Assembly (NCBI GenBank): GCA_024704765.1
Contig: JAKMXF010000144.1
Coordinates: forward strand, 372,001 to 436,000
Direction of reading: 5' to 3'
DNA length: 64,000 bases
Source of the DNA: Oopsacas minuta
Lineage: Eukaryota; Animalia; Porifera
Shown: piece after piece, positions 12,391-51,381 of the stretch
How positions within the stretch are numbered: position 1 is the first letter of the stretch
Layout of the letters: each line of letters starts with the position of its first letter
Program-made: the position numbers and the translations under genes
Notes under the pieces: model-generated
What the model saw: the letters and a program-made list of their open reading frames with translations, nothing else
The model's database searches: none
What the model was told of the DNA's origin: nothing

Positions 12391-15300
12391 TCAAATGGAA
12401 TTAGAATTAGAATCCTGTATGAGTTTGTTGTTTACAAAATCCCTCGCATTCTCCATCACTCTATTCACATCTTCATCACTGCCGTAACTCTGCTCAAATG
12501 TCAAATATTTCTTGTAAAAAGATTTCATTTTGTTAACCGACAAATTGAGAGTTGTCCCTCTCTCGCAGACCTCTCTTACACTATCAGGAGTATCGTATTT
12601 TGTTAGAGTATCAATATAGACAAACCAAATATCCAGACGTTTAGGGTGGTTACTCAGAAGAGTCTCGAATATCGTCCTACCCCTCTCCCCATCTCCATGT
12701 TTAAACTCAAATTGTCCGAATTTTGACATTATTTCAACATGAAACTTATCTGCCAATTTTTGTAAGGCATTTTCACACAATTTTCTTGCTTCATCAATTC
12801 TACCAGATTGCATTAACAGTTGTCCGTACTCCTTCCATACACGAGGATTAAGCTTAAACTTGCGAGTCATTGTCGCATAAATATCTTGTGCTTGCTTTAG
12901 CTTGTTTGAATTAATATATATTTGTGCAAGTTTGAAGTAGAGAGTCTCTGGATCATTCTCTCTCAATCCCTCTTGGAATAGAGTCATCAGTAAGCTTTGT
13001 GTTCCGTAAATATTCTCCAAATTGAGGAGAGAAATCCACACATTTAGCTTCTCTTCTTCCAAACGGAAGTTGATAGTCTCCAGCGCCTTCTTCCCGATTT
13101 CTCTCGCTTTGTCCACATTAGCTAGATGCAGGTGAAATGCTATATACTGTATCCAGAGGTAGGAAGAGTTAGGATTCGCTAACAGGAGTCTGTCAAAGTC
13201 TTCTGCACAATCAGGCTGTCTGTTAGGATCTAAGAGGCTCTGTTCAGCTCTATAAATACTCTCTTCTTCTTTCCGCTTAGCTGCTCTCTTTTGTCTTTTT
13301 GTTTTCTTCTTTACAACTTGTCCTTCTTCTGACGTATCAGATTCTGAGCTGGCGTCCTTATCATCGTTTCTTGACTTGTCCCATTCCCATTGGAAGCCCC
13401 CTGTCCCATCTAGTCGGGGGAGAGGATTTGAATCAACATGTCTTCGCTTCTTTTTAACTGAACTATTGATCTTCTGTGTACCCATTGGTACCGATTGTAT
13501 TTCTTCAACATCCAATTCTGTCATTTCGATATCTTCATCTGAATTCGACTGATCCATTGACTCTATAGTGTTCCTAACTTTAGTGACGTCACTGATATCT
13601 TCATCTCCTGAATCGTTATGTTCCATTCCTCCTCCGTTTCTTAGTCTCATTTCTTTTATTTTCTTGTTTTTATCTGGTTTTCCTTTCTGTGCACAGATGA
13701 GAGCGAATTTTTCAGGATTCGTATGAGAGAGACGTAGTGATAAATCTACATTTCCGTTCTCTGGGTCGATATTCAGCACTTTACACTTAACCAATTTCCC
13801 AACAGGAAATCGATCCTTATATTTTTCTAATAAACTGATCACTCATGTTCTTAATTCTAACTCTACCAGTTATTGTCCTGCTCAATTTTACAAACACTCC
13901 AACATCAGTAGCAGCCTTCACGAATCCGCGTATTATTTCACCCTTCGTTAGATCGTGTATAGAGTTTACCACACGGTTCTTGACAACAGGATCCGTCATT
14001 AGGAATTCACCAATACAGCTCTCACGTGTTGACATAATTATCTTATCTTCAATAGCAATTACCTTAGCTTGTAACAGCTGTTTATCTGCAAAACCATCTG
14101 TCATATCTTTAGAATAAGAATCACATATATCCGTTACTTCTATCCTTGCTGTCTCACCAAATGGTAGACTCACTATAAGTGCTTGATTTGAGTATACATG
14201 TGTTACTTGTACACATACAATAGTCCCTATTTCTATTGGATGTTTGGAGATGAGTGTGCCTGTTGATTTTCTTCCTTTCTTTTGCTTTTTAATTAATTCT
14301 ACTTTCACAGTTTGTCCGAGTTTGAAGTGTTTGTCTAAATTTCTCAGCACATTAATATCTTGATTGCATAGCAACAGAGGTATGTATAGCGATCTGCTAG
14401 ATCCTATGCTGATAACAAGATTGCTATTAGGCCAGATTTCCTCCACACACCCGTAGCATGAATCACCGATATTATCTAATTGCAATCTCGGAATGCTCTC
14501 TACACTTACTGACATTTTGCTTGTACGCATAGTCATGTCTAATACTGTATATTCTCTCTTGAGAAGATTATCAGTTAGCTTAAGAGACTTAGAAACAACT
14601 CTAGCTCTTACGGTCTCTCCTTTCTGGAATGTTTTTGTTGGAAATTTCCCCTCAATTGGATTATCAGATATTTCGCTAGCTAAGATCCTCCCTGAATAAG
14701 CCCCAACTCGAACTTTCAGCATTAGTGCATGGACTTCTTTAACCTACCAGAAGAAGAACAATTAGATACTTCGTAAGTACAGATAAATTTGTTTGTTTTT
14801 TTTTGTATTAATATATCTCCAGCATTTTGACTGAGTATATTACGTTATTAATTAGCAATAAGAAGATTGAGGTAATTCTATACTTGATATTTCAGTGGTT
14901 TGATAACTAAGTTAGTACATACCTGTGCTGTGACGATAGAACCGATATTCACGTCTTCTCTATCTCTAACTAACCGCTTTTTCTGTGTGCTAGAGAGTTG
15001 AGAACCCTCCATTAGCAGGCCTAGCGCTATTCCCATACTATCACTGTACAGTATGTCATTCAGTATAACCACGTTAACTCGCTTGTTCATGTATTGTTCT
15101 AGAATATTCTGGAAGCTTTTTGTACTCAATGCTACTTCTCGTATAATATACACTAATCTAGGACCGTGTAGTGTAGCAACAAGACCTACCATATACTTAG
15201 GCAGCACTAATTCTATCCTAGCCTGTACTGAACTACCTACAGCTAGCTCGGATATAAGAACTCCTTCTGTAGAGTACGATTCAACTAGACTCTCATTTAA

Positions 15301-41252: not shown

Positions 41253-44200
41253 TTATTTCAAAACAATTTCCATAATCATCTGATTAAAAATCTCAAAAAT
41301 CTCATCGGTTACAGTCTGTGGATATTTCATAATCTGTTGAATACAGCTGCGACGTAACGATGTACAGATATCTCTGAAGATATAGCGACAAATCTTATTG
41401 GCTAACAAACACCAGTGAAACTCAATTGACAATACCAATAGTGCAACTGCGTTGTTAGGACTGATATGTCTGCCGAGGGAAGTTGTCACCTTGGTTTTAT
41501 AATTCATAATTAAAATATCAGTGGTGAAGAATAGAGATAAGAGATGTAGGAATTTTGTGAATAGATTTGACGAGCTAGTGGAAGAAGGATCATGATAACC
41601 TGGGAATATACTGGATTGGTCTTGTGTAGCTTTAAAAACATCTTTCAAAAGAATATTCATTGAAGGAGACAGTGATGTAGCATGATCTGTTAGAAAATTA
41701 ATATGTTTCAGTTGTATATCATTAGGATTCTGGAAATCTGTATTCTGATCTTGATCATGTGGCCATAACATATTCGAGATCGTAGGACACGAATAATCAC
41801 AGTAGTAAATCTGATGGATGATTGACTCAAAAATGAAAGCAGGGACAAGTGTGAAAGCGACACATGAACCACTAGAAGTGGCACGAGCCCATCTTATCAT
41901 AGCTCCCAATACATCTGAACTAGCTTCTATCTTATCCACATGTACTCGAAACGATTTATTTTCAACACAAAACTCAAAATCAAAATCTTTCTCATTGAAT
42001 TTTGAATAGAAACAAACGTTTGAGTTCTGTTCAGTAAAAACAGTTAAGTCATTAGAATCTAGGAGAGAAGCTTCTGTGTCTATATGAGGCCGTTTAGCCG
42101 GTGGACAATACTCAATGCTACCTACTTCAGGACGAATAGCTCTATTCAATTTATACTGACGTCTAGCTGATGAATCATATGAATAATCTTCATCACTTAG
42201 AGCACCAGAGCTAAGCTCACTACCTGAATCATCCATGTATTTAGACGGAGAGCGTGAGTACCATTGACTAGGCGTAGAGTTCATATAAGCTGTGTTATAG
42301 TCATGAGGGGGTGAATACGAGGATGGAGACTGAGAAGGAGGAGAGGTAGGAGAGAGACAGAGTCTATGGGGTAAGTCTGTTGGTATAGGTTTGTGTAGAA
42401 CTTCACATAGGTAGCTGAATGCTTTAATTGACTGCTGGAACTGTTCCTCATCAACTGGGTCAGATAGAATATTAATTAGAGAAGATACAGTCCCTGTGAA
42501 GTCATGGAAGAAACGTCTTTTGTGAGTTCTAAAATTTCACAATGAATAAATTCTGTAAAGTAAATTTTAGGAAATAACTCACCTGAATAAATATGGCAGA
42601 GATAGAACACAAGTTGTTCTCTCAACAGCTGATCCTTTCAGCATACTATTAATAACCCCCATTCCATACGGAGTCTCAGCTGTTCTGGTTATCTTATCCA
42701 TAAGATTGTACTCCTCTGTGGGTGCATACACCGGGCAATTACTCATATCAAGCTTGGATATGCCAATATATCCGGGAGGAAGGCTCTCAGCATGTATACA
42801 CAGTTCATAGAACAACGGAATGTTACCGTATCGTAGAAGCTTCTCAAAACAAGCATTATCTTGAGAAATACGCTGTAGTATCTTAACACACTTAAAGTGT
42901 GGATTACGAGAAACTAAGATGTATAGGATGAGAGCACGGAATATATCTGAAGAAGCTAGGTAGATGAGACAACTCTTTATGTGACTGATTCTGCAGGAAA
43001 ATACATATCGAAGTTAGGCAGAAACATTAGTAAGGTTATCATTAAGACTTTGCATAGTGAATTAATGGTACGACGAATTGTCCAGAGACACATATTCTCG
43101 GGAAGAAGGCACTCTAACCTACATTTTTGCAATTTTAAGCATATATAACAGATTCATAGTTTTCGAGATATGGCCATACAAGGTGGTTGATCCGCAATCA
43201 ATTGTGGTTATAAGATTTGACGTGGATTAGGGAGGTGTAACAAATCCCTGTAATTTCCTAGTATTACTCGTGTATGCATCAATGAGTATAATAAGTACTA
43301 ACTTAGATAGTAGATGTAATAGATGACATTCCATCCAGCTGATCAGAGATTGAGTATTACCAGCACCATCTGAGCTATCAGCTGATTGAATGAATGAGTC
43401 TGAAGCTAGGAAAGATAACTCATTCATTTGCATGTTTGTAGGGATGTGTATCTCTGTGGAAGAACTATCCTGTTCTGTATCTTCAGAGCTTGCCTTAATG
43501 GCCTCATTTATCCTAAATACAAGTGTTGAGAGGATGTTAAGAGAAAATAAATACAGTGCATGCAGGTTATAAGAACCCCCATATGAGTAGCAATAGATAT
43601 TCTTATAACCAGCTTATACTATATTAGTGGACAGGGTATACTTACTGTTGTAAGAGGTGAGTGAGTGTGTCTACGAGTTTTAATTGCTTAACCATGAAAA
43701 CAAACGATTCTTCATCATAATAGTAATGATTGATTGTGTGTAGTAGTTGTATTTTAGTTTTAACCGAATTGACCTCTTTCAAGACATCAATAATAAACTG
43801 TAACGCATTTGATAGTTTTATGTGTTGTCTGTTACTCGGATCATTACTACAACCTGACATTATATCAATCAAGTGTTGAGGCATTTCATTTGGAGGATAT
43901 GAACTCAGTTTGCTTAACAACAATTGTATCCCTCCTGCATTACCTATACTAGCACGTGTCTCACTAGAATTATTAAATTCCAGGAAACACTCCCAGGCAA
44001 CCGAACTGATTTGAGAGTTCTTGCTTTGACAGAGTTCTATAACTTTATAAACACCTCCATGAGAATTGAAACTAGAAGCGAGAATATCTTTTTTGTGACG
44101 TAGAATGTTTGTAAATATCTTCAGCACCTGAAGACAAGTAGAGAGTCATAAATATAACAAAATAAACAATAACAAGTGCTGTCTCTTGCTAACGTTAGAT

Positions 44201-47200
44201 ATTTTCAAGTGATTAATTGTCTACACTGCAGACAGTAATAATAAGAAATTCACTAAAACGCTGAAAATCTGGAGAATTTCATGAATAACAAAGCAAAATT
44301 ACAATTATAATTTTGAGGTCAGACAGAATATCGACTGAATAGCATAACGGTAGTCATAATTACTGATGGCGAACTTATTACGTAATTATAAATGTGATAA
44401 ATTACAACACGACAACACGTTGATTAGGCTAGCATCACTGTTAATACCACTGTATCTATGACGATATTGCGTATCAGTTTACCTTGAACCATAACCAATG
44501 GAGCATATATCAGCATGGCAAAGATTCAAATATAAGTACTTATTGCAAATAACATTCAGTTCTATAAGAAAATGTTGAAGTTCGTTTTGTTAATATTGGC
44601 ATTCATGTCATTAGTACATGGACAATGTAACGTAGGAGAGGTATTTATTGGTTGTGGTTCAGCGTGTGAGGACACCTGTGACAATTATCAAGATGTTGGT
44701 CGTATTTGCACTCTTCAGTGTGTGTCTGGTTGCTTTTGTGAGGGAAATAAGGTACGAGGACCTGGTGGAAGCTGTGTGGATATTCTAGAATGTTCACCTC
44801 AGTGTGATATTAACCAACAGTACGGATGTGGTAGTGAATGTCCTGATACCTGTGATAACTATAATGTATCTAGGAGCTGTATTGAGAGCTGCAGGTAATG
44901 ATAAGTTACATTATGACGTGGCAGTATACCACAATAGCACTATGACTAGTCAGTATAGTTAGAATCCATACAACGGCCATTACCGCTTTCTTGGCTCACA
45001 AATCTTATCAATAGCCACCGAATACGTGACATATAAATGTATGGTATTAATTCCGGTCAACTCCCATTATATCGAAGCTCAAGGGACCACGATAATTACT
45101 TCGATATAACAGGAGTAGATTGTATATTTATTTACAGGATTGGATGTTTTTGCAATCAAGGCTACGTTCTAATAGATGAGAACTCTAATGAATGCATACA
45201 CACATCAGAGTGTCCAGGGAGAGAAGGGTGTGCTATAGATGAGCACTACAGGATATGCGGGACAGCTTGTCCTACTACATGTGACAACAGAGGAGAGCAG
45301 ACAATTTGCCCGAGTGTATGCGTAGATGGATGTTTCTGTAACGACGGATTCGTATTGCATGAGGGACAATGTGTAAAGGAAGATACATGTCTTCAATTAC
45401 TGGGACTACTACCGAGTAAAGGAGCAGCTTTGGAGAATTTGGGATTACTTCTTATGCTAGCTAGCTTATTGGTTATCCTCCTCATAGGATTATAATCTAC
45501 TACCCTAAGTCCCCTAATAAAAAACTAAAAACATTCTCTAGATTTGGTAGCTCATTTTGAACAACATTTCTATTTTATTATCTTCATTCGCCCCTTATTT
45601 TGTCTGTTTGCGTTTTTTATGAAAAAATACATTTATATTCGTTCAAGGGTAGCCGGTAGGAGACAATACTACAATACACAAATATTCCTGTAAAAATCTC
45701 AATGATAATGTTATAGAGTAATTAATTAATGAAATATAATTAATTTGTCCTGCTATGCAGACAATATTATTCCTACAGACTAAATATTATCTATTCAAGT
45801 GGATAAACGTATAACAACACTGACATAATATTATATCACCAAAACTGGCCTGGAACGATATTACAACCATTGAATGAGAAGACAAAACAATTTGTCTAAG
45901 AAAAGTGGTTCTACGCGAAGGAAATTAAGCCACTTGGTTTTATATCGGAGGAGGACGACTCCAGAAATGCTCAAGTAATGGAAAATCAAATATCTATTTA
46001 AACAAAAGACTTTAAGGTTACTGAAAAAGAAAAGATGAATATTCTAAAATCAATAATACTGATTGTAATAATAGCTACTGCAGCACAAGCCAGGCAAATA
46101 TGTGGACCAAATCAGGAGTATAAAGAATGTGGTTGTCACGTTACATGTAAGAATTTCCTTAACCTAACAATTTGTGATGAGAGGAGCTGCGTAGAGGACT
46201 GTTTTTGTAAAAGTTACTTTGCTTTAAACAGTACTGGACATTGCGTAGATATCTTCAGCTGTAACAGACCTACAAATCCTTGTGGAGAAGATGAAGTGCA
46301 TTGGGAATGTGGGACCGCTTGTCCACCTACTTGTGATGATCCTAATCCAGAGTGTGAAGAATACTGCCAAGCTGGATGTGTATGTAAGGAGAGTACTGTT
46401 AGGAACAGTGATGGAGATTGTGTTACTGTAAGTGATTGCCCTAAGGACCCAGAAGATCCTAGTAAAGAGGAGTGTGTGGGGAATCAAGTCTACGTTGAGT
46501 GCAAATCAAACTGTCCATACACTTGTAATAACTGCTATGATGAAGTTAACTGTGAAAATATAACTTGCACGTAAGTATATTGTTATTGAATAATTTCATA
46601 AACGAGCTAATTACGTATATTATTGTAGGCCTGGCTGTGATTGCAAAGATGGGTTCGTCCTAGCTGATAACACTCACAATGTGTGTATTCAAGAGTCTGA
46701 ATGCCAAGACTCATCAGGTGAAGAACATGATAAGGATAAAGATGATGATAACGATGAGGATAATACAGGTTCAGATAGAGGTCATGGTAAGGGTAGGAAA
46801 GGGCATGATCATGAAGATAATACAGGTTCAGATAGAGGTCATGGTAAGGATAGGAACGGGCATGATCATGAGGATAATACAGGTTCAGATAGAGGTCATG
46901 GTAAGGATAGGAACGGGCATGATCATGAGGATAATACAGGTTCAGATAGAGGCCATGGTAAGGATAGGAACGGGCATGATCATGAGGATAATACAGGTTC
47001 AGATAGAGGTCATGGAAATGATGAGAATAGGGACAATGGTAAACACGGTCATGGACATGGAAAAAATAACAATGAAAGAAAAAGGCGGCCAAAGCCAAAC
47101 CCACATTAAGTTATTAACTTGTTAGCATAATTATATTACCAGTAATTTTTGCATATATTATGTATACACGTACATAGGTACATTAAGTTGTACAAATATT

Positions 47201-50200
47201 ATAGTGTGTAATTAGATATTGTAAGAATGGGCAGTCCTTAAGCAAGTCATAAAGGAAGTGATCCCAAGGTGTCAGTTATATGATACCGTAAATTAATATT
47301 CATACAATCACATAATGTTACATTACCATTGCAAATAACAAGTTCAAAATGACTCATCTCTGAACTATCAACCCTGCCTAGGCAATAAGGCTGTAACATG
47401 ATCCTGCTATAACCACCATCTTGTATACTTCTGAGTATAAATATAGAATTACCCTAGACTTGTTACTATTCTACAAAATCTACAATGCGGACGTACATTA
47501 TTTCTGCATTATTAATTGCAGTAGCTGCCATAGCAGTACATGCACTAACAGAAACTTGTAAAGAGGGTGAAGTATACAATCTATGTGGTAGCGCATGTCC
47601 CGAGACCTGTTTTGACACTTCAGAAGTGATATGTACCCAACAATGCGTTCCAGGGTGCTATTGTGAGGAAGGTAAAGTTAGGAACAAAAACGAACAATGT
47701 GTAGATAGAGTGAACTGTTTCGTTGATGAATTGCCACTTCGTTGTGATCCTCTAGAGGAGAAATGTTCCCTGGGTAAGGATCTGGTAGATGAGTTGATAA
47801 ACGGAATTGGACCAATACATATAGAGGACATCCCCAAATTACCAATCCCCGCAATACCGGAAATACCCGTAGGAGATCGTCCAACAAGGCCAGATCGACC
47901 CACGGGTGATCGTCCAGGCCGTCCCACTGGAGATCGTCCAGAACGTCCCACTGGAGATCGTCCAGACCGTCCCACTGGAGATCGTCCAGACCGTCCCACA
48001 GGGGATCGTCCAGATCGACCCACTGGAGATCGTCCACACCGTCCTACTGGAGATCGTCCAGACCGTCCCACAGGGGATCGTCCACACCGTCCTACTGGAG
48101 ATCGTCCAGACCGTCCCACAGGGGATCGTCCACACCGTCCCACTGGAGATCGTCCAGACCGGCCCACTGGAGATCGTCCAGAACGTCCCACTGGAGATCG
48201 TCCAGAACGTCCCACTGGAGATCGTCCAGACCGTCCCACAGGGGATCGTCCAGGCCGTCCCACTGGAGATCGTCCAGAACGTCCCACTGGAGATCGTCCA
48301 GACCGTCCCACTGGAGATCGTCCAGAACGTCCCACTGGAGATCGTCCAGACCGTCCCACAGGGGATCGTCCAGATCGACCCACTGGAGATCGTCCACACC
48401 GTCCTACTGGAGATCGTCCACACCGTCCCACAGGGGATCGTCCACACCGTCCTACTGGAGATCGTCCAGACCGTCCCACAGGGGATCGTCCACACCGTCC
48501 CACTGGAGATCGTCCAGACCGGCCCACTGGAGATCGTCCACACCGTCCTACTGGAGATCGTCCAGACCGTCCCATAGGGGATCGTCCCGTAAGGCCAGAT
48601 CGACCTGATGGAGATAGACCAACAAGACCGGCTAGACCTGATGGAGATCGTCCAACAAGACCAGCTCGACCTGATGGAGATAGACCAACAAGACCGGCTA
48701 GACCTGATGGAGACAGGTCAAGGTACCACGGAAGGAGCCACTCCTAACCAGCTGATTAGCTGAATTTCCAATAAAATAATTGTAAATACTCTCCTTTGTA
48801 GTTTGTGTGTATATCTCTAGAAACTTTCTGATATAATTAATACTTGTAAATAGGTCATAACTTCAAGCTATATATCTGTTATGTGAATAGTATTTAATAA
48901 ATCATATTCTTATCTTATTGAAAAGTTAAAACAAATTGTAAATCTTGTTAAACTGGTCATCTTTTGAAGTCAATGACTGACAAATATCTAAAGATCGAAA
49001 GTCACACACCTTAGACAAGGAGAGAGGGAGCTTGGGAGCTTAAACACCCACACCCACTGTTTTCTACTATTAATATAAACCATTATGGACAAAAATAGTA
49101 AACTCCCACTTGATATTATAAGCCTCCTCCTCCCACCCACTTTGAATAGTTGTCTACCTGGGTCATATATGTACAGTAACATACGTATGTCTATTTGTAG
49201 CCGAAACACAAAATTTTGTTTTACTAATACAGTATGTAATAAAAGTGAATCTTGAAAAATAGTCAATCAACACATCTGCGTCACCAGCATTTATGGCTAT
49301 AAATACAGTTAAAATCAGTGTTTGTTATTATCATAAAAATCTACAATGAAGACATTCATAATAACTACGCTAACAATCACGGTAATTGCCCTTACAGTAC
49401 AAGTGGTAATTGCCATTCCAGCTCCAACTTGTAAGGAGGGCGAAGAAATCAGGAATTCATGTAATGCAACTGAGAGAACTTGCACAAGACCGAATGAAGA
49501 GCCAGAGACTGTCCCAACAACCTCATCAGGCCTACAATGTTGCTGTAAGGGCGACCTAGTTAGAAATGACGATGGAAACTGTGTTCTACTTAATGAGTGT
49601 GATGCTGAGGATGTTGAAGATAGTGATAGTGATAGTGATAGTGATAATGATAGTGATAGTGATAGTGATAGTGATAGTGATAGTGATAGTGATAGTGATA
49701 GTGATAGTGATAGTGATAGTGATAGTGATAGTGATAGTGATAGTGATGATGAATGTGAAAGACCAAAAGGAAGAAGACGTCATAAACATAGACATCGTGG
49801 AAGAGGCAGGAAAGGTCGTCCATGCAAATATCCCAAAACAACTACCAGTACTACCGCAACTAATGCAACTACGGTAGCCACCGGTACTACCGAAATTACC
49901 GGAATTACCGGAAATACTACAACTACCAGTACTAACGCAACTGCGGTAACCACGGGTACTACCGCAATTCCCGGAACTACAGAACCAGAGGATGTAGGTG
50001 ACTTTGGAGAATTACCAAGTAGCAGGGAAAATCCAGATGGAGGACAAGAAGGAGGGCGGAGACTACCACGACCAAGAAGAACCAGTGATCACATCTTCAG
50101 AAACAAGAGGTCGCTCAGAAGTATCATGCCCTAAAACTTTCTAATCAGCTGATCTTACAATTAGTTTTTAGTTATCTATACTTAAGGTGCTATATGTTTG

Positions 50201-51381
50201 TATAAAGTGATACTTATTTGTATTGTGTATAGGATTTGTAGAAATAAACAGATATGCTTCTTATACTTTGCCATCTTAGTCTATTCGTTAAAAATAGTGA
50301 GTGAGAGGTAAACAGGAATAATTAGATATATTGTACTACTACGAATTTGTATGTTAGCAAGAGAAGTGGACACAATCGTAATATCTAATAACTGACCTCA
50401 ATAATAGTACTGTCTTCTTCTATTCTATGCGAGTACTCTAGCAGTATTGTAATCCCACTAGTATCAATCATACGGACACAGATATGAAGTGAGTGTGTTA
50501 GTCCAGTGAATAGCTTGATAACAGACATAATAGACTTATTATCCTCACGATTGAATGCTCCTAGCAACATCTCCACTAAACCCAGCTCACATAACAGCTC
50601 TATATGATGTGGTTTATGTACTTTTAACACGAATAACAACTTCACAACATCTGACCATAGCTTTCCCCTGTTCTCAATCTCTCCATCTGATAATATGTTT
50701 ATTAAACACTTCAGTGTGTCATTCGATAAAATCTGAATTAAAATAAATAAAACCGCCTACACTGTAATTACAGGTAACATCATAAATATCAAATGGAAAT
50801 ATGCTATAGTTATATTGAATTTCAAGATGGTATATTTTGACTACAATACAATCAGAGTTCGAGAGTACAGTGGTTATCGCATACATCCTTGGGAGTAACA
50901 AAATATAAATCATACACAAGAGTATATGATAACCGTTTTCCCCAGGGATGTTACGATATGTGATATGTTCTTAGAAGCGATAATATACGTAAATGTGATC
51001 TCAGGGCACTTTAGGTATTTCGAAATAACTTACAGATGATTGCACTAAGTTAGATTGTATACAGCAGTTCCCCAAAATACCAACAATAAGTGAGATCAGC
51101 TGAGAATGCTCCATGTGAGATTGTATGACGTAATCTCTTGTGTAGTATATTAGAATTGTTACAAGCAACTTCAAGCCCTGTAGATCTCTGAAAGAACGTA
51201 CATTAGGTTTTGAATTGACATGCTTCATCAGTACACGAAGCTGGACCAGAATATTTGGAATATTCTTATCTTCAAAACAAACATTCAATTTGTTAATCTC
51301 TTCAGTAAAGTTTAAAGTAATCTCAGAAACTTTCTTGGTGTTTTTTTCAGAGGCAGATTCACTTTTCGTGCACGTTGTCAT
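41253..51381 (-). CDS. ARMC5: Armadillo repeat-containing protein 5 (ARM + C-terminal BTB), multi-exon with a 6.27-kb intron
   Basis: Exon 1 51381-51034 (L..LR.......V.SFR...GL..LV.IL...ILGNCC), exon 2 50732-50397, and GAG|GTCAGT at 50396 joining ttgtcttcag|GTG at 44127 (phase 0). ARM exons run 44.1-42.6 kb and the BTB-like terminal exon reads [14 protein letters not shown]. Confidence 0.85.
43554..43620. mobile_element. MITE family 3 short copy (ARMC5 intron)
   Basis: GGTTATAAGA...GAGTAGCAATA...TTATAACCAG matches the reverse complement of about 8120-8166 and starts TA|CAGTG. Confidence 0.55.
44572..45495 (+). CDS. Secreted/anchored protein with 3 TIL (trypsin-inhibitor-like Cys-rich) domains and a hydrophobic C-terminus (TIL-A); exons 44572-44894, 45138-45495
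   Basis: Signal peptide, three C..C.S.C..TC...C...C..GCFC...C..C units, phase-2 intron, and tail [28 protein letters not shown]. Confidence 0.9.
45054..45122. mobile_element. MITE family 2 copy, 69 bp (in the TIL-A intron)
   Basis: CGGTCAACTCCCATTATATCGAAG ... CTTCGATATAACAGGAGTAGATTG|TA: imperfect 24-bp TIRs around a 21-nt core. Confidence 0.7.
46035..47109 (+). CDS. Secreted protein with 3 TIL domains and a His/Asp/Gly-rich repeat tail (TIL-B); exons 46035-46570, 46629-47109
   Basis: Signal peptide; AC|GTAAGT...TTGTAG|G completes the third TIL domain ([14 protein letters not shown]); tail ([19 protein letters not shown])n. Confidence 0.9.
46756..47016 (+). repeat. 57-bp coding tandem repeat, 4 full copies and 1 partial
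   Basis: The unit encodes [19 protein letters not shown]; unit starts at 46756 and 46813 are 57 bp apart. Confidence 0.95.
47436..47443 (+). promoter_or_regulatory. TATA-like element of TIL-C
   Basis: TATAAATA about 41 nt before AAAATCTACA-ATG; the same element and spacing occur at TIL-D. Confidence 0.5.
47485..48747 (+). CDS. Secreted protein with 1 TIL domain and a long RPTGDRP[D/E/H/G] repeat tail (TIL-C), intronless
   Basis: Signal peptide, [19 protein letters not shown]...[12 protein letters not shown], about 29 octamers, then three [11 protein letters not shown] units. Confidence 0.9.
47896..48714 (+). repeat. 24-bp coding tandem repeat (about 29 copies) followed by a 33-bp repeat (about 3 copies)
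   Basis: Unit like CGTCCCACTGGAGATCGTCCAGAC; variation falls at synonymous sites and at one codon (D/E/H/G). Confidence 0.95.
49298..49305 (+). promoter_or_regulatory. TATA-like element of TIL-D
   Basis: TATAAATA about 40 nt before AAAATCTACA-ATG. Confidence 0.5.
49346..50134 (+). CDS. Secreted protein with a degenerate TIL domain, poly-(Asp-Ser), an Arg/His/Lys block and a Thr-rich region (TIL-D), intronless
   Basis: Signal peptide; TCKEGEE..SC...RTC...[21 protein letters not shown] (8 Cys); about 21 DS pairs; [24 protein letters not shown]; Thr-rich stalk; C-terminal RNKR. Confidence 0.88.
   Translation: MKTFIITTLTITVIALTVQVVIAIPAPTCKEGEEIRNSCNATERTCTRPNEEPETVPTTSSGLQCCCKGDLVRNDDGNCVLLNECDAEDVEDSDSDSDSDNDSDSDSDSDSDSDSDSDSDSDSDSDSDSDSDSDDECERPKGRRRHKHRHRGRGRKGRPCKYPKTTTSTTATNATTVATGTTEITGITGNTTTTSTNATAVTTGTTAIPGTTEPEDVGDFGELPSSRENPDGGQEGGRRLPRPRRTSDHIFRNKRSLRSIMP
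49619..49744 (+). repeat. (GATAGT)n hexamer microsatellite encoding (Asp-Ser)n
   Basis: About 21 units with a single GATAAT interruption, in frame within TIL-D. Confidence 0.95.

Follow-up and report, generated by a model that had tools for sequence, protein, structure and literature searches.

Four genes encoding predicted secreted proteins, here called A to D, lie on the forward strand within a single intron of ARMC5 in the sponge Oopsacas minuta (the window analyzed comprises 64,000 nucleotides, positions 372,001 to 436,000 of contig JAKMXF010000144.1, assembly GCA_024704765.1). A comparison of this window with four other assemblies (L001, L002, L005, and L006/L007) placed A, B, and one gene joining features of C and D, termed CD, in the same ARMC5 intron, adjoining RCL1, in each of the four. 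We tentatively read the locus as a hexactinellid TIL cluster in which the B product organizes silica or metal ions, the A product is anchored, and C and D are the split halves of CD, an interpretation that we place slightly short of an even chance.

The cluster and the biomineral hypothesis attached to it are already known. Francis et al. (2023, PMC10282587, section 2.3 and Fig. 4) described the TIL cluster of O. minuta, reported that four such genes stand in tandem in A. vastus and O. minuta, named an O. minuta orthologue with three TIL domains and His-rich repeats, and proposed the cluster as a candidate scaffold of the glass skeleton. The locus examined here agrees with that description, with four genes and a B protein combining three TIL domains with a His-rich tail. 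The new elements are the presence of the cluster within this ARMC5 intron in four additional assemblies, the GPI-anchor-like signal with which A constantly ends, the constantly His-rich acidic tail of B that lacks a conserved sequence, and the presence elsewhere of a CD gene as opposed to the separate C and D of O. minuta, where the TIL domain of D is degenerate. The state of knowledge on function is unchanged by the comparison.

Four genes nested in one ARMC5 intron

The features of the locus are listed below in window coordinates.

43642..44127, minus strand: ARMC5 exon downstream (in gene sense) of the host intron, supported by Pfam ARM_ARMC5 and an X4 RNA contig
44128..50396, minus strand: ARMC5 host intron, 6,269 bp, phase 0, GT..AG on the minus strand
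44572..45495, plus strand: gene A, 226 aa, exons 44572-44894 and 45138-45495, supported by Pfam TIL, the X4 intron joint, and the NCBI model
46035..47109, plus strand: gene B, 338 aa, exons 46035-46570 and 46629-47109, supported by Pfam TIL, the X4 joint, and protein KAI6656480.1
46754..47022, plus strand: tandem repeat of B, 57 nt x4.7, 96% matches, encoding a 19-aa His-rich unit
47436..47484, plus strand: TATAAA box and 5' leader of C, from alignment with the upstream region of D
47485..48747, plus strand: gene C, 420 aa, single exon, supported by Pfam TIL (E 2.3e-11), X4 depth over the head, and the NCBI 420-aa model
47890..48713, plus strand: repeat of the C polyampholyte tail, 24 nt x29 plus 33/66-nt variants, from repeat analysis, giving GDRPxRPT
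49298-49345, plus strand: TATAAA box and 5' leader of D, matching those of C
49346..50134, plus strand: gene D, 262 aa, single exon, supported by the ORF and the NCBI 262-aa model
49619..49747, plus strand: repeat of D, GATAGT x21.5, microsatellite-like, encoding the (DS)n run
50397..50645 (upper boundary provisional), minus strand: ARMC5 exon upstream of the host intron, supported by the ORF and the RNA joint to 44127

The initial annotation had placed four co-oriented genes antisense within one phase-0 intron of ARMC5, and the splicing of this host intron was borne out by RNA. X4, an RNA-like run whose read assembly covered positions 43600-47880 of the window, yielded a contig spanning 43645-44129 of the downstream ARMC5 exon, in which Pfam ARM_ARMC5 was matched with an E value of 1.4e-22 (80.9 bits, compared to a cut-off of 79.9). 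Because an X4 contig passes directly from 44127 to 50397, its end at 44129 corresponding to window position 50399 onward, ARMC5 is spliced across 44128-50396, and the translation reads ...STIIE followed at the joint by VLKIF.... Counterparts of the upstream exon are present in assemblies L001 and L002. Genes A to D, which fill 65% of the intron, are thus whole genes inside a segment spliced out of the host mRNA, i.e., nested genes. The O. minuta annotation splits ARMC5 in two because nested genes are not modeled.

Proteins encoded by A and B

Gene A encodes a signal peptide, three ten-cysteine TIL domains, and a GPI-anchor-like hydrophobic C terminus; its intron is in phase 2 and falls within TIL2, and an identical 226-aa model is carried by the NCBI annotation. 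Orthologues that are 54-59% identical and have a like tail type were found in the four other assemblies. Read by eye, all five tails (5/5 orthologues) lead from small residues through a short spacer into a hydrophobic end that has zero cytosolic residues, so that the pattern of a GPI-anchored protein is found at both termini, with an N-terminal signal peptide and the C-terminal signal. We infer that the A product is held by a GPI anchor on the outer or luminal face of the membrane.

The spliced model of gene B is identical to KAI6656480.1 of O. minuta and presumably corresponds to LOD99_1276. The protein comprises a signal peptide, three ten-cysteine TIL domains, and a 134-aa His/Asp/Gly/Asn tail, and its 58-nt phase-2 intron lies within TIL3. 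X4 RNA contigs confirmed both GT..AG joints, at 44895-45137 in A and at 46571-46628 in B. Across the five assemblies, the B tails range from 134 to 580 aa and contain 13-34% His, the remainder being Gly/Asn/Gln/Glu/Asp; they are net acidic with a short basic C-end, and their repeat units are unalignable. A His-rich acidic composition has been kept where the sequence itself has not. The repeat of the tail in L002 is HEH(N/Q), consistent with Aphrocallistes, and the Sp2, Sp4, and Sp5 tails are Gly/His-rich. His/Gly-rich tails fit metal binding as well.

Genes C and D and the CD gene

From its N terminus, the C protein consists of a signal peptide, one ten-cysteine TIL domain, a Cys-bracketed CDPxxEKC motif, a linker, and approximately 30 GDRPxRPT octamers. 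In D, a signal peptide is followed by an 8-Cys TIL remnant, (DS)~21, a Cys-bracketed Arg/His/Lys block, a Thr-rich stretch, and a basic C-end that holds an RNKR site. A signal peptide and a TIL domain had been claimed for all four proteins; the TIL claim stands for A, B, and C (PF01826) and fails for D. Since D gave no Pfam TIL match at E<=0.1, has only 8 Cys with its central loop replaced, and reached only 10.2 bits with an HMM made from its paralogues, its TIL is considered a degenerate remnant. The tails fared better, the hydrophobic end of A, the His/Asp/Gly repeats of B, the GDRPxRPT units of C, and the (DS)n run, basic block, and Thr-rich region of D all being found as initially annotated.

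The heads of C and D are 36% identical, and the two genes have a core promoter in common, their aligned upstream regions both containing TATAAATA, TTGTTAyTAT, and AAAATCTACAATG. In the other assemblies, the CD gene encodes a TIL domain, CDPxDxEC, (DS)n, a basic block, PC, and (TRPDR)n together in one protein. Judging from this distribution of parts, C and D of O. minuta are the products of a split of one ancestral CD gene. The possibility that C and D are artefactual ORFs within repeats was ruled out, since each has a TATA box, a poly(A) signal, a signal peptide, and orthologous CD genes, and massive transcription in X4 further excludes it for C.

TIL heads and their relatives

The counts of TIL domains rest on a family-specific HMM, as a regular expression missed many of them. 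Pfam TIL (PF01826) matched A, B, and C with E values from 2e-11 to 5e-22 (45.9 and 61.4 bits for A, 78.3 for B, and 44.1 for C, with a gathering cut-off of 24.5), whereas D falls outside the family by both the cut-off and the ten-cysteine pattern. A domain tree unites A-TIL2 with B-TIL3 in a single clade (97/95), and the phase-2 intron is common to both.

Among solved structures, A-TIL1 comes nearest to the bee chymotrypsin inhibitor 1CCV (E 3.6e-7), in which RICTMQC, the loop that we take to hold the reactive site, aligns to RICTLQC of A-TIL1. This C-T-x-x-C loop is kept in A-TIL1 and in the TIL of C and is absent from the TIL domains of B and the D remnant; its two x residues vary between orthologues (LQ, LD, AL, AL, and TN). 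Given that A-TIL1 and the C TIL keep the loop of true inhibitors, the heads may serve a separate function. The protein-atlas neighbors of the C head are arthropod TIL inhibitors, with scores of 0.82 that lie below the reliability line, and a word-indexed homology search gave no match for the C head and only low-complexity chance matches for D. The proteins could accordingly be secreted or surface serine-protease inhibitors for innate defense or symbiont control, with activity residing in the TIL heads and the cationic, His-rich, or Pro/Arg-rich tails being antimicrobial, metal-withholding, or tethering. The 1CCV alignment and the atlas neighbors agree with such a role, as does the variable loop, a trait of many inhibitor families. 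However, neither the B domains nor the D remnant has the loop motif, the conserved distinguishing feature of B is the composition of its tail and not its head, and tip-specific expression of the B orthologue (PMC10282587) is not predicted by a defense role. We give this defense reading a minor share of the probability.

Conservation of the cluster

Synteny was observed directly, the cluster occupying the same intron in all four further assemblies, where three genes are found compared to four in O. minuta. No further TIL-coding segment was detected by tblastn with all heads in L001, L002, or the whole window. In the text of Francis et al. (PMC10282587) on A. vastus, the fourth TIL gene is reported as incomplete; because the search with the heads returned no further TIL segment, an incomplete fourth gene of this type was not found in L002. 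The cluster reads as an old tandem family kept within one ARMC5 intron, and it is so far restricted to silica-building hexactinellids. The five-assembly comparison also strengthened the earlier notion of a paralogue family combining a disulfide-rich TIL head with interchangeable ionic tails, and the guess, made from the letters alone, that the source was a sponge with a silica skeleton proved right, O. minuta being a hexactinellid.

Expression of the nested genes

Transcript levels of A, B, and C greatly exceed that of ARMC5 in X4 (C as measured by its head), with depths of 240,000-515,000 over the C head and 7,934 at the intron joint of A; these values are assembler word depths from one run and are qualitative only. 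According to the passages of PMC10282587 on A. vastus, the B orthologue shows a roughly 50-fold rise in expression within the growing osculum (tip), the TIL genes are not co-regulated, with one alone upregulated in the tip, and the scaffold hypothesis rests on this behavior of the His-rich B orthologue. The same source reports that the growing tip also upregulates collagens, collagen oxidases, and proteases. Since new tissue and collagen are made there too, the tip signal of B is not silica-specific.

These data bear on a reading in which the proteins are general extracellular matrix, mucus, or adhesive glycoproteins, or Zn/Cu-crosslinked structural proteins, with no direct silica role. The collagen-related program of the tip is in line with it, and the very high transcript depth of C would suit a bulk structural product. 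The Thr-rich stretch of D is mucin-like (a weak Pfam Mucin match, E 0.006), and the Sp2, Sp4, and Sp5 tails resemble polychaete jaw proteins, which are Gly/His-rich and metal-hardened. The likeness of the B tail to the His/Asp region of glassin and the restriction to hexactinellids nonetheless weakly favor a mineral link, and we give this explanation a minor share of the probability.

Functional interpretation

Under the interpretation that we tentatively favor, that of a TIL cluster with a silica- or metal-organizing B, each protein would enter the secretory pathway via its signal peptide and consist of a compact TIL head knotted by disulfides, joined to an ionic tail that is intrinsically disordered and evolves fast. 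In the growth zone, the His-rich acidic tail of B would most likely bind and organize silicic acid or silica (or metal ions), much as glassin's His/Asp domain does in vitro. A would be displayed on the membrane by its predicted anchor. C would keep the Arg-Pro-Asp polyampholyte repeats of the ancestral CD protein, probably as an extended spacer, and D would keep its poly-DS block, probably phosphorylated, together with the polybasic block. As the evidence stands, B alone is a credible candidate for the silica matrix, and the four proteins are probably not one co-regulated machine.

A bolder model would make the cluster a modular silica-matrix toolkit specific to hexactinellids, in which GPI-anchored A on the silicalemma recruits its TIL partners and the labor is shared among the tails, that of B acting as His-rich polycondensation template, that of C as rigid polyampholyte spacer, and that of D as phospho-DS/polybasic nucleator. 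We consider this model improbable. If it were true, the C/D split of O. minuta would constitute a natural experiment in which a single ancestral protein had its two tail modules parted. Similarly improbable is a single coordinated silica-templating system, co-expressed where spicules form and assembled through TIL heads, with A as anchor, B as His-rich catalyst, C as zwitterionic spacer, and D as phospho-DS/polybasic nucleator. All of its tail chemistries have analogues among biomineral proteins, the cluster and its tail classes are kept in five assemblies, transcription of A, B, and C alike is high in O. minuta, and PMC10282587 itself raises repetitive scaffold proteins or TIL-domain proteins, in combinations. 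Yet the absence of co-regulation in A. vastus contradicts the co-expressed four-gene cassette suggested by the initial annotation, and the other assemblies do with three genes. Binding between TIL heads is likewise a supposition, and the text of the paper characterizing the silica-occluded hexactinellid proteins hexaxilin and perisilin, a targeted study and not a full proteome, mentions no TIL protein, which counts against the favored interpretation as well.

The cluster is, as already hypothesized in print, a candidate component of silica deposition in glass sponges, which lack silicatein for this purpose. Sharper targets are now offered by a B tail whose composition is kept through complete sequence turnover, the putatively anchored paralogue A, and the natural split of the C and D modules.

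Comparison with known systems

Ascaris-type TIL inhibitors (MEROPS I8; AMCI, 1CCV) have the ten-cysteine fold in common with the heads of A, B, and C, and the C-T-x-x-C loop with A-TIL1 and C-TIL, but the classic members are single domains of 55-60 aa without long ionic tails or membrane anchors.

Long Asp-Ser runs like the DS block of D and CD occur in dentin phosphophoryn (DSPP) and in Asp/Ser-rich shell proteins; such runs become polyanionic on phosphorylation. The unit is (DS)n in D and (DSS)n in phosphophoryn, and both lineage and mineral differ (calcium phosphate/carbonate versus silica). The zwitterionic idea of diatom silaffins and silacidins, acidic phospho-Ser beside a basic region, also recalls D and CD with their predicted phosphorylation. 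Silaffins, however, need KxxK-type motifs and polyamines borne on Lys; D/CD lack these and have an Arg/His-rich basic block. What D displays of these phosphophoryn- and silaffin-like traits is confined to the basic blocks and the (DS)n run.

Glassin, hexaxilin, and perisilin are, to our knowledge, the sole proteins linked to glass-sponge silica. Glassin is secreted, as B is predicted to be, and both are His-rich with Asp, with fast-evolving, species-specific repeats, a likeness by composition only; glassin has no TIL domains and is defined by a conserved C-terminal domain. Both are nested in an intron of another gene, and both are upregulated in the growing tip in the account of PMC10282587. 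The passages of that paper on the cluster cover only the His-rich member and leave out the GPI-like tail of A, the C and D tails, the CD split, and the ARMC5 host. The cluster of Francis et al. 2023 (Avas.s003.g337 and its neighbors; the LOD99_1276 cluster) is otherwise the same system, with the same locus, species, architecture, tandem arrangement of four, and proposed role.

A TIL gene cluster nested in an ARMC5 intron

The minus-strand exon at 43642-44127 scored above the Pfam ARM_ARMC5 cut-off. Three of the four sequencing runs covering the stretch (X1-X3) had a flat, DNA-like depth; the fourth, X4, was RNA-like, with depth confined to exons, adapter ends and spliced joints, including the GT..AG introns of gene A (44895-45137) and gene B (46571-46628). 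An X4 contig exits the window at 44129 and resumes with letters unique to 50399. Since this contig joins both sides, ARMC5 is spliced across 44128-50396 (6,269 bp), and the reading frame crosses the joint in phase 0. The initial annotation, which had placed four genes in a 6.27-kb phase-0 intron of ARMC5, was confirmed almost to the base. In the public annotation, ARMC5 is divided into genes of 799 and 231 aa flanking the TIL cluster (L003 5219-8472 and 14351-15347). Because the RNA contig joins both parts, ARMC5 (window exons 43642-44127 and 50397-50645) is one gene containing nested genes, which occupy 65% of its intron.

Genes nested in the ARMC5 intron
44572-44894 + 45138-45495, plus strand: gene A, 226 aa; signal peptide, three ten-cysteine TIL domains, hydrophobic C-terminus
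46035-46570 + 46629-47109, plus strand: gene B, 338 aa; signal peptide, three TIL domains, 134-aa tail
47485-48747, plus strand: gene C, 420 aa, one exon; one TIL domain, short Cys-bracketed motif, linker, ~30 GDRPxRPT octamers
49346-50134, plus strand: gene D, 262 aa, one exon; signal peptide, cysteine-containing head

The public annotation of contig JAKMXF010000144.1 (GCA_024704765.1) lists genes of 226, 338, 420 and 262 aa in this order. In an exhaustive profile search with the first exon of B, the spliced B model proved identical to the 338-aa KAI6656480.1, "Tenascin-like [Oopsacas minuta]". JAKMXF is the accession stated in the O. minuta genome paper, so the window belongs to this glass sponge. 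TATA-like boxes lie ~40-50 nt upstream of B, C and D, and AATAAA soon follows the stop codon in A, C and D. X4 assembler word depth, a poor measure of level that we used qualitatively only, was ~400-590 on the ARMC5 exon and 30-300 between genes, rising to tens of thousands for A and B and to 240,000-515,000 for the C head, which marks all three of these genes as strongly transcribed. Within the intron of A, the contigs from X1-X3 are interrupted at 45056-45110, where summed word depth rises ~60-fold; this segment resembles a short dispersed repeat present in many copies.

Domains and tails of the four proteins

All four products have signal peptide-like N-termini. The initial annotation had assigned TIL domains to every one of them, which held for A, B and C (Pfam TIL E-values of 2e-11 to 5e-22) and failed for D. 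The latter had no match to Pfam TIL, keeps 8 cysteines with the central loop gone, and reached only 10 bits against an HMM built from its own paralogues; what it carries is a degenerate TIL remnant. The heads of D and C are 36% identical.

The proposal of four distinct tails was borne out by the hydrophobic end of A and the repeats of B, C and D. The tail unit of B is a 19-aa His/Asp/Gly/Asn sequence from a 57-nt repeat (4.7 copies), and the octamers of C are coded by a 24-nt repeat (29 copies). In D, the head is followed by ~21 Asp-Ser pairs coded by GATAGT (21.5 copies), then by an Arg/His/Lys block with a cysteine on either side, and finally by a Thr-rich stretch and a basic end. Possible proprotein-convertase sites occur near the C-termini of B (RKRR, within 46629-47109) and D (RNKR, within 49346-50134); glassin is suspected to be cut by an unknown protease (PMC10282587).

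Conservation of the cluster across assemblies

Orthologous regions from four further assemblies (L001, L002, L005 and the two haplotigs L006/L007) were retrieved via the first exon of B and the ARMC5 exon. In all four, the corresponding pair of ARMC5 exons encloses the TIL genes in antisense orientation, with RCL1 adjacent, so the nesting is old. The cluster counts three genes in each of them, one fewer than in O. minuta. In L001, a ~39-nt minisatellite of ~20 copies (13956-14776) shares an uninterrupted ORF with the first coding exon of ARMC5; it may either be intronic or represent a coding expansion.

Gene A is the most conserved (54-59% identical across assemblies). Its C-terminus always consists of small residues, then a short spacer, then hydrophobic residues up to the very end, a pattern that would fit a GPI-anchor signal and not a membrane-spanning helix with cytosolic residues after it. 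In L005 (reverse strand), the conserved TIL2 intron of A, at ~9070, apparently has a GC-AG donor, the others being GT-AG.

The B tail is always His-rich (His 13-34%, the remainder Gly, Asn/Gln and Glu/Asp) and net acidic with a short basic C-terminus, and its repeat units are non-alignable between species, with lengths of 134-580 aa. Its composition is kept as its sequence turns over. In L002, the tail repeats HEH(N/Q) over about the length published for Aphrocallistes, with which this assembly is consistent. The third TIL domain of B and its intron are absent in L005 and L006, where the B orthologues are single-exon (L005 5645-7897 and L006 5289-7487, reverse strand), with His/Gly/Asn/Glu tails enlarged to ~570 aa.

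The third gene of the other assemblies, "CD", encodes a TIL domain, CDPxDxEC, (DS)n, a basic block ending in PC and (TRPDR)n-type repeats, in this order. O. minuta C retains a CDPxxEKC motif together with Arg-Pro-Asp repeats, and D retains the DS run plus the basic block bracketed by cysteines. The two genes have a core promoter and leader in common. On the best reading, a lineage-specific duplication gave rise to C and D, each of which then lost the tail modules kept by the other. In a tree of 37 TIL domains, with few columns and many open forks, each domain position groups across species, and A-TIL2 joins B-TIL3 (support 97/95). It is these two domains that are interrupted by the same phase-2 intron, immediately ahead of the xGCxC motif.

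Possible functions of the TIL proteins

Both the locus and the biomineral hypothesis of the initial annotation are already published, in section 2.3 and Fig. 4 of the Aphrocallistes vastus genome paper (Francis et al. 2023, PMC10282587). A screen for biased-composition proteins raised in the growing osculum identified Avas.s003.g337, raised roughly 50-fold in the tip, which has three TIL domains and HEH(N/Q) repeats spanning ~120 aa; its O. minuta orthologue was named LOD99_1276 "based on the synteny" (PMC10282587). Our literature search found no further paper mentioning these TIL genes, and TIL proteins go unmentioned in the paper characterizing hexaxilin and perisilin, which were both identified from hexactinellid silica. 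The additions made here are incremental: ARMC5 nesting in five assemblies, the GPI-like anchor of A, the composition-only conservation of the B tail, the C/D split and the decayed TIL of D.

We infer every function considered for A-D. The matrix interpretation is reasonable and matches the published hypothesis. The further suggestion, that the paralogues might be co-expressed as one coordinated four-part system, is highly improbable: the genes of the cluster lack co-regulation (PMC10282587), the other assemblies have three genes and a proteomic link is absent.

A protease-inhibitor or defense role is unlikely but a serious rival, given the resemblance of A-TIL1 to its closest solved relative, the bee chymotrypsin inhibitor 1CCV. 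RICTLQC of A-TIL1 aligns to RICTMQC of 1CCV, the loop that presumably holds the reactive bond, and the corresponding stretch of C reads ICTQQC; orthologues differ at the two loop residues. Equally unlikely is a role in a non-mineral matrix, in mucus or in metal crosslinking. In its favor, the very abundant transcripts of C suggest a bulk product, Gly/His-rich tails are also suited to binding metals, and the growing tip forms new tissue as well, with collagens and proteases up-regulated (PMC10282587).

Our tentative preference, quite possibly correct, is for a secreted or surface-held matrix family in which the His-rich acidic tail of B would participate in silica deposition and the remaining members would have different matrix or surface roles, without co-regulation. 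The model for the B tail is glassin, whose His/Asp region acts in silica deposition in vitro.
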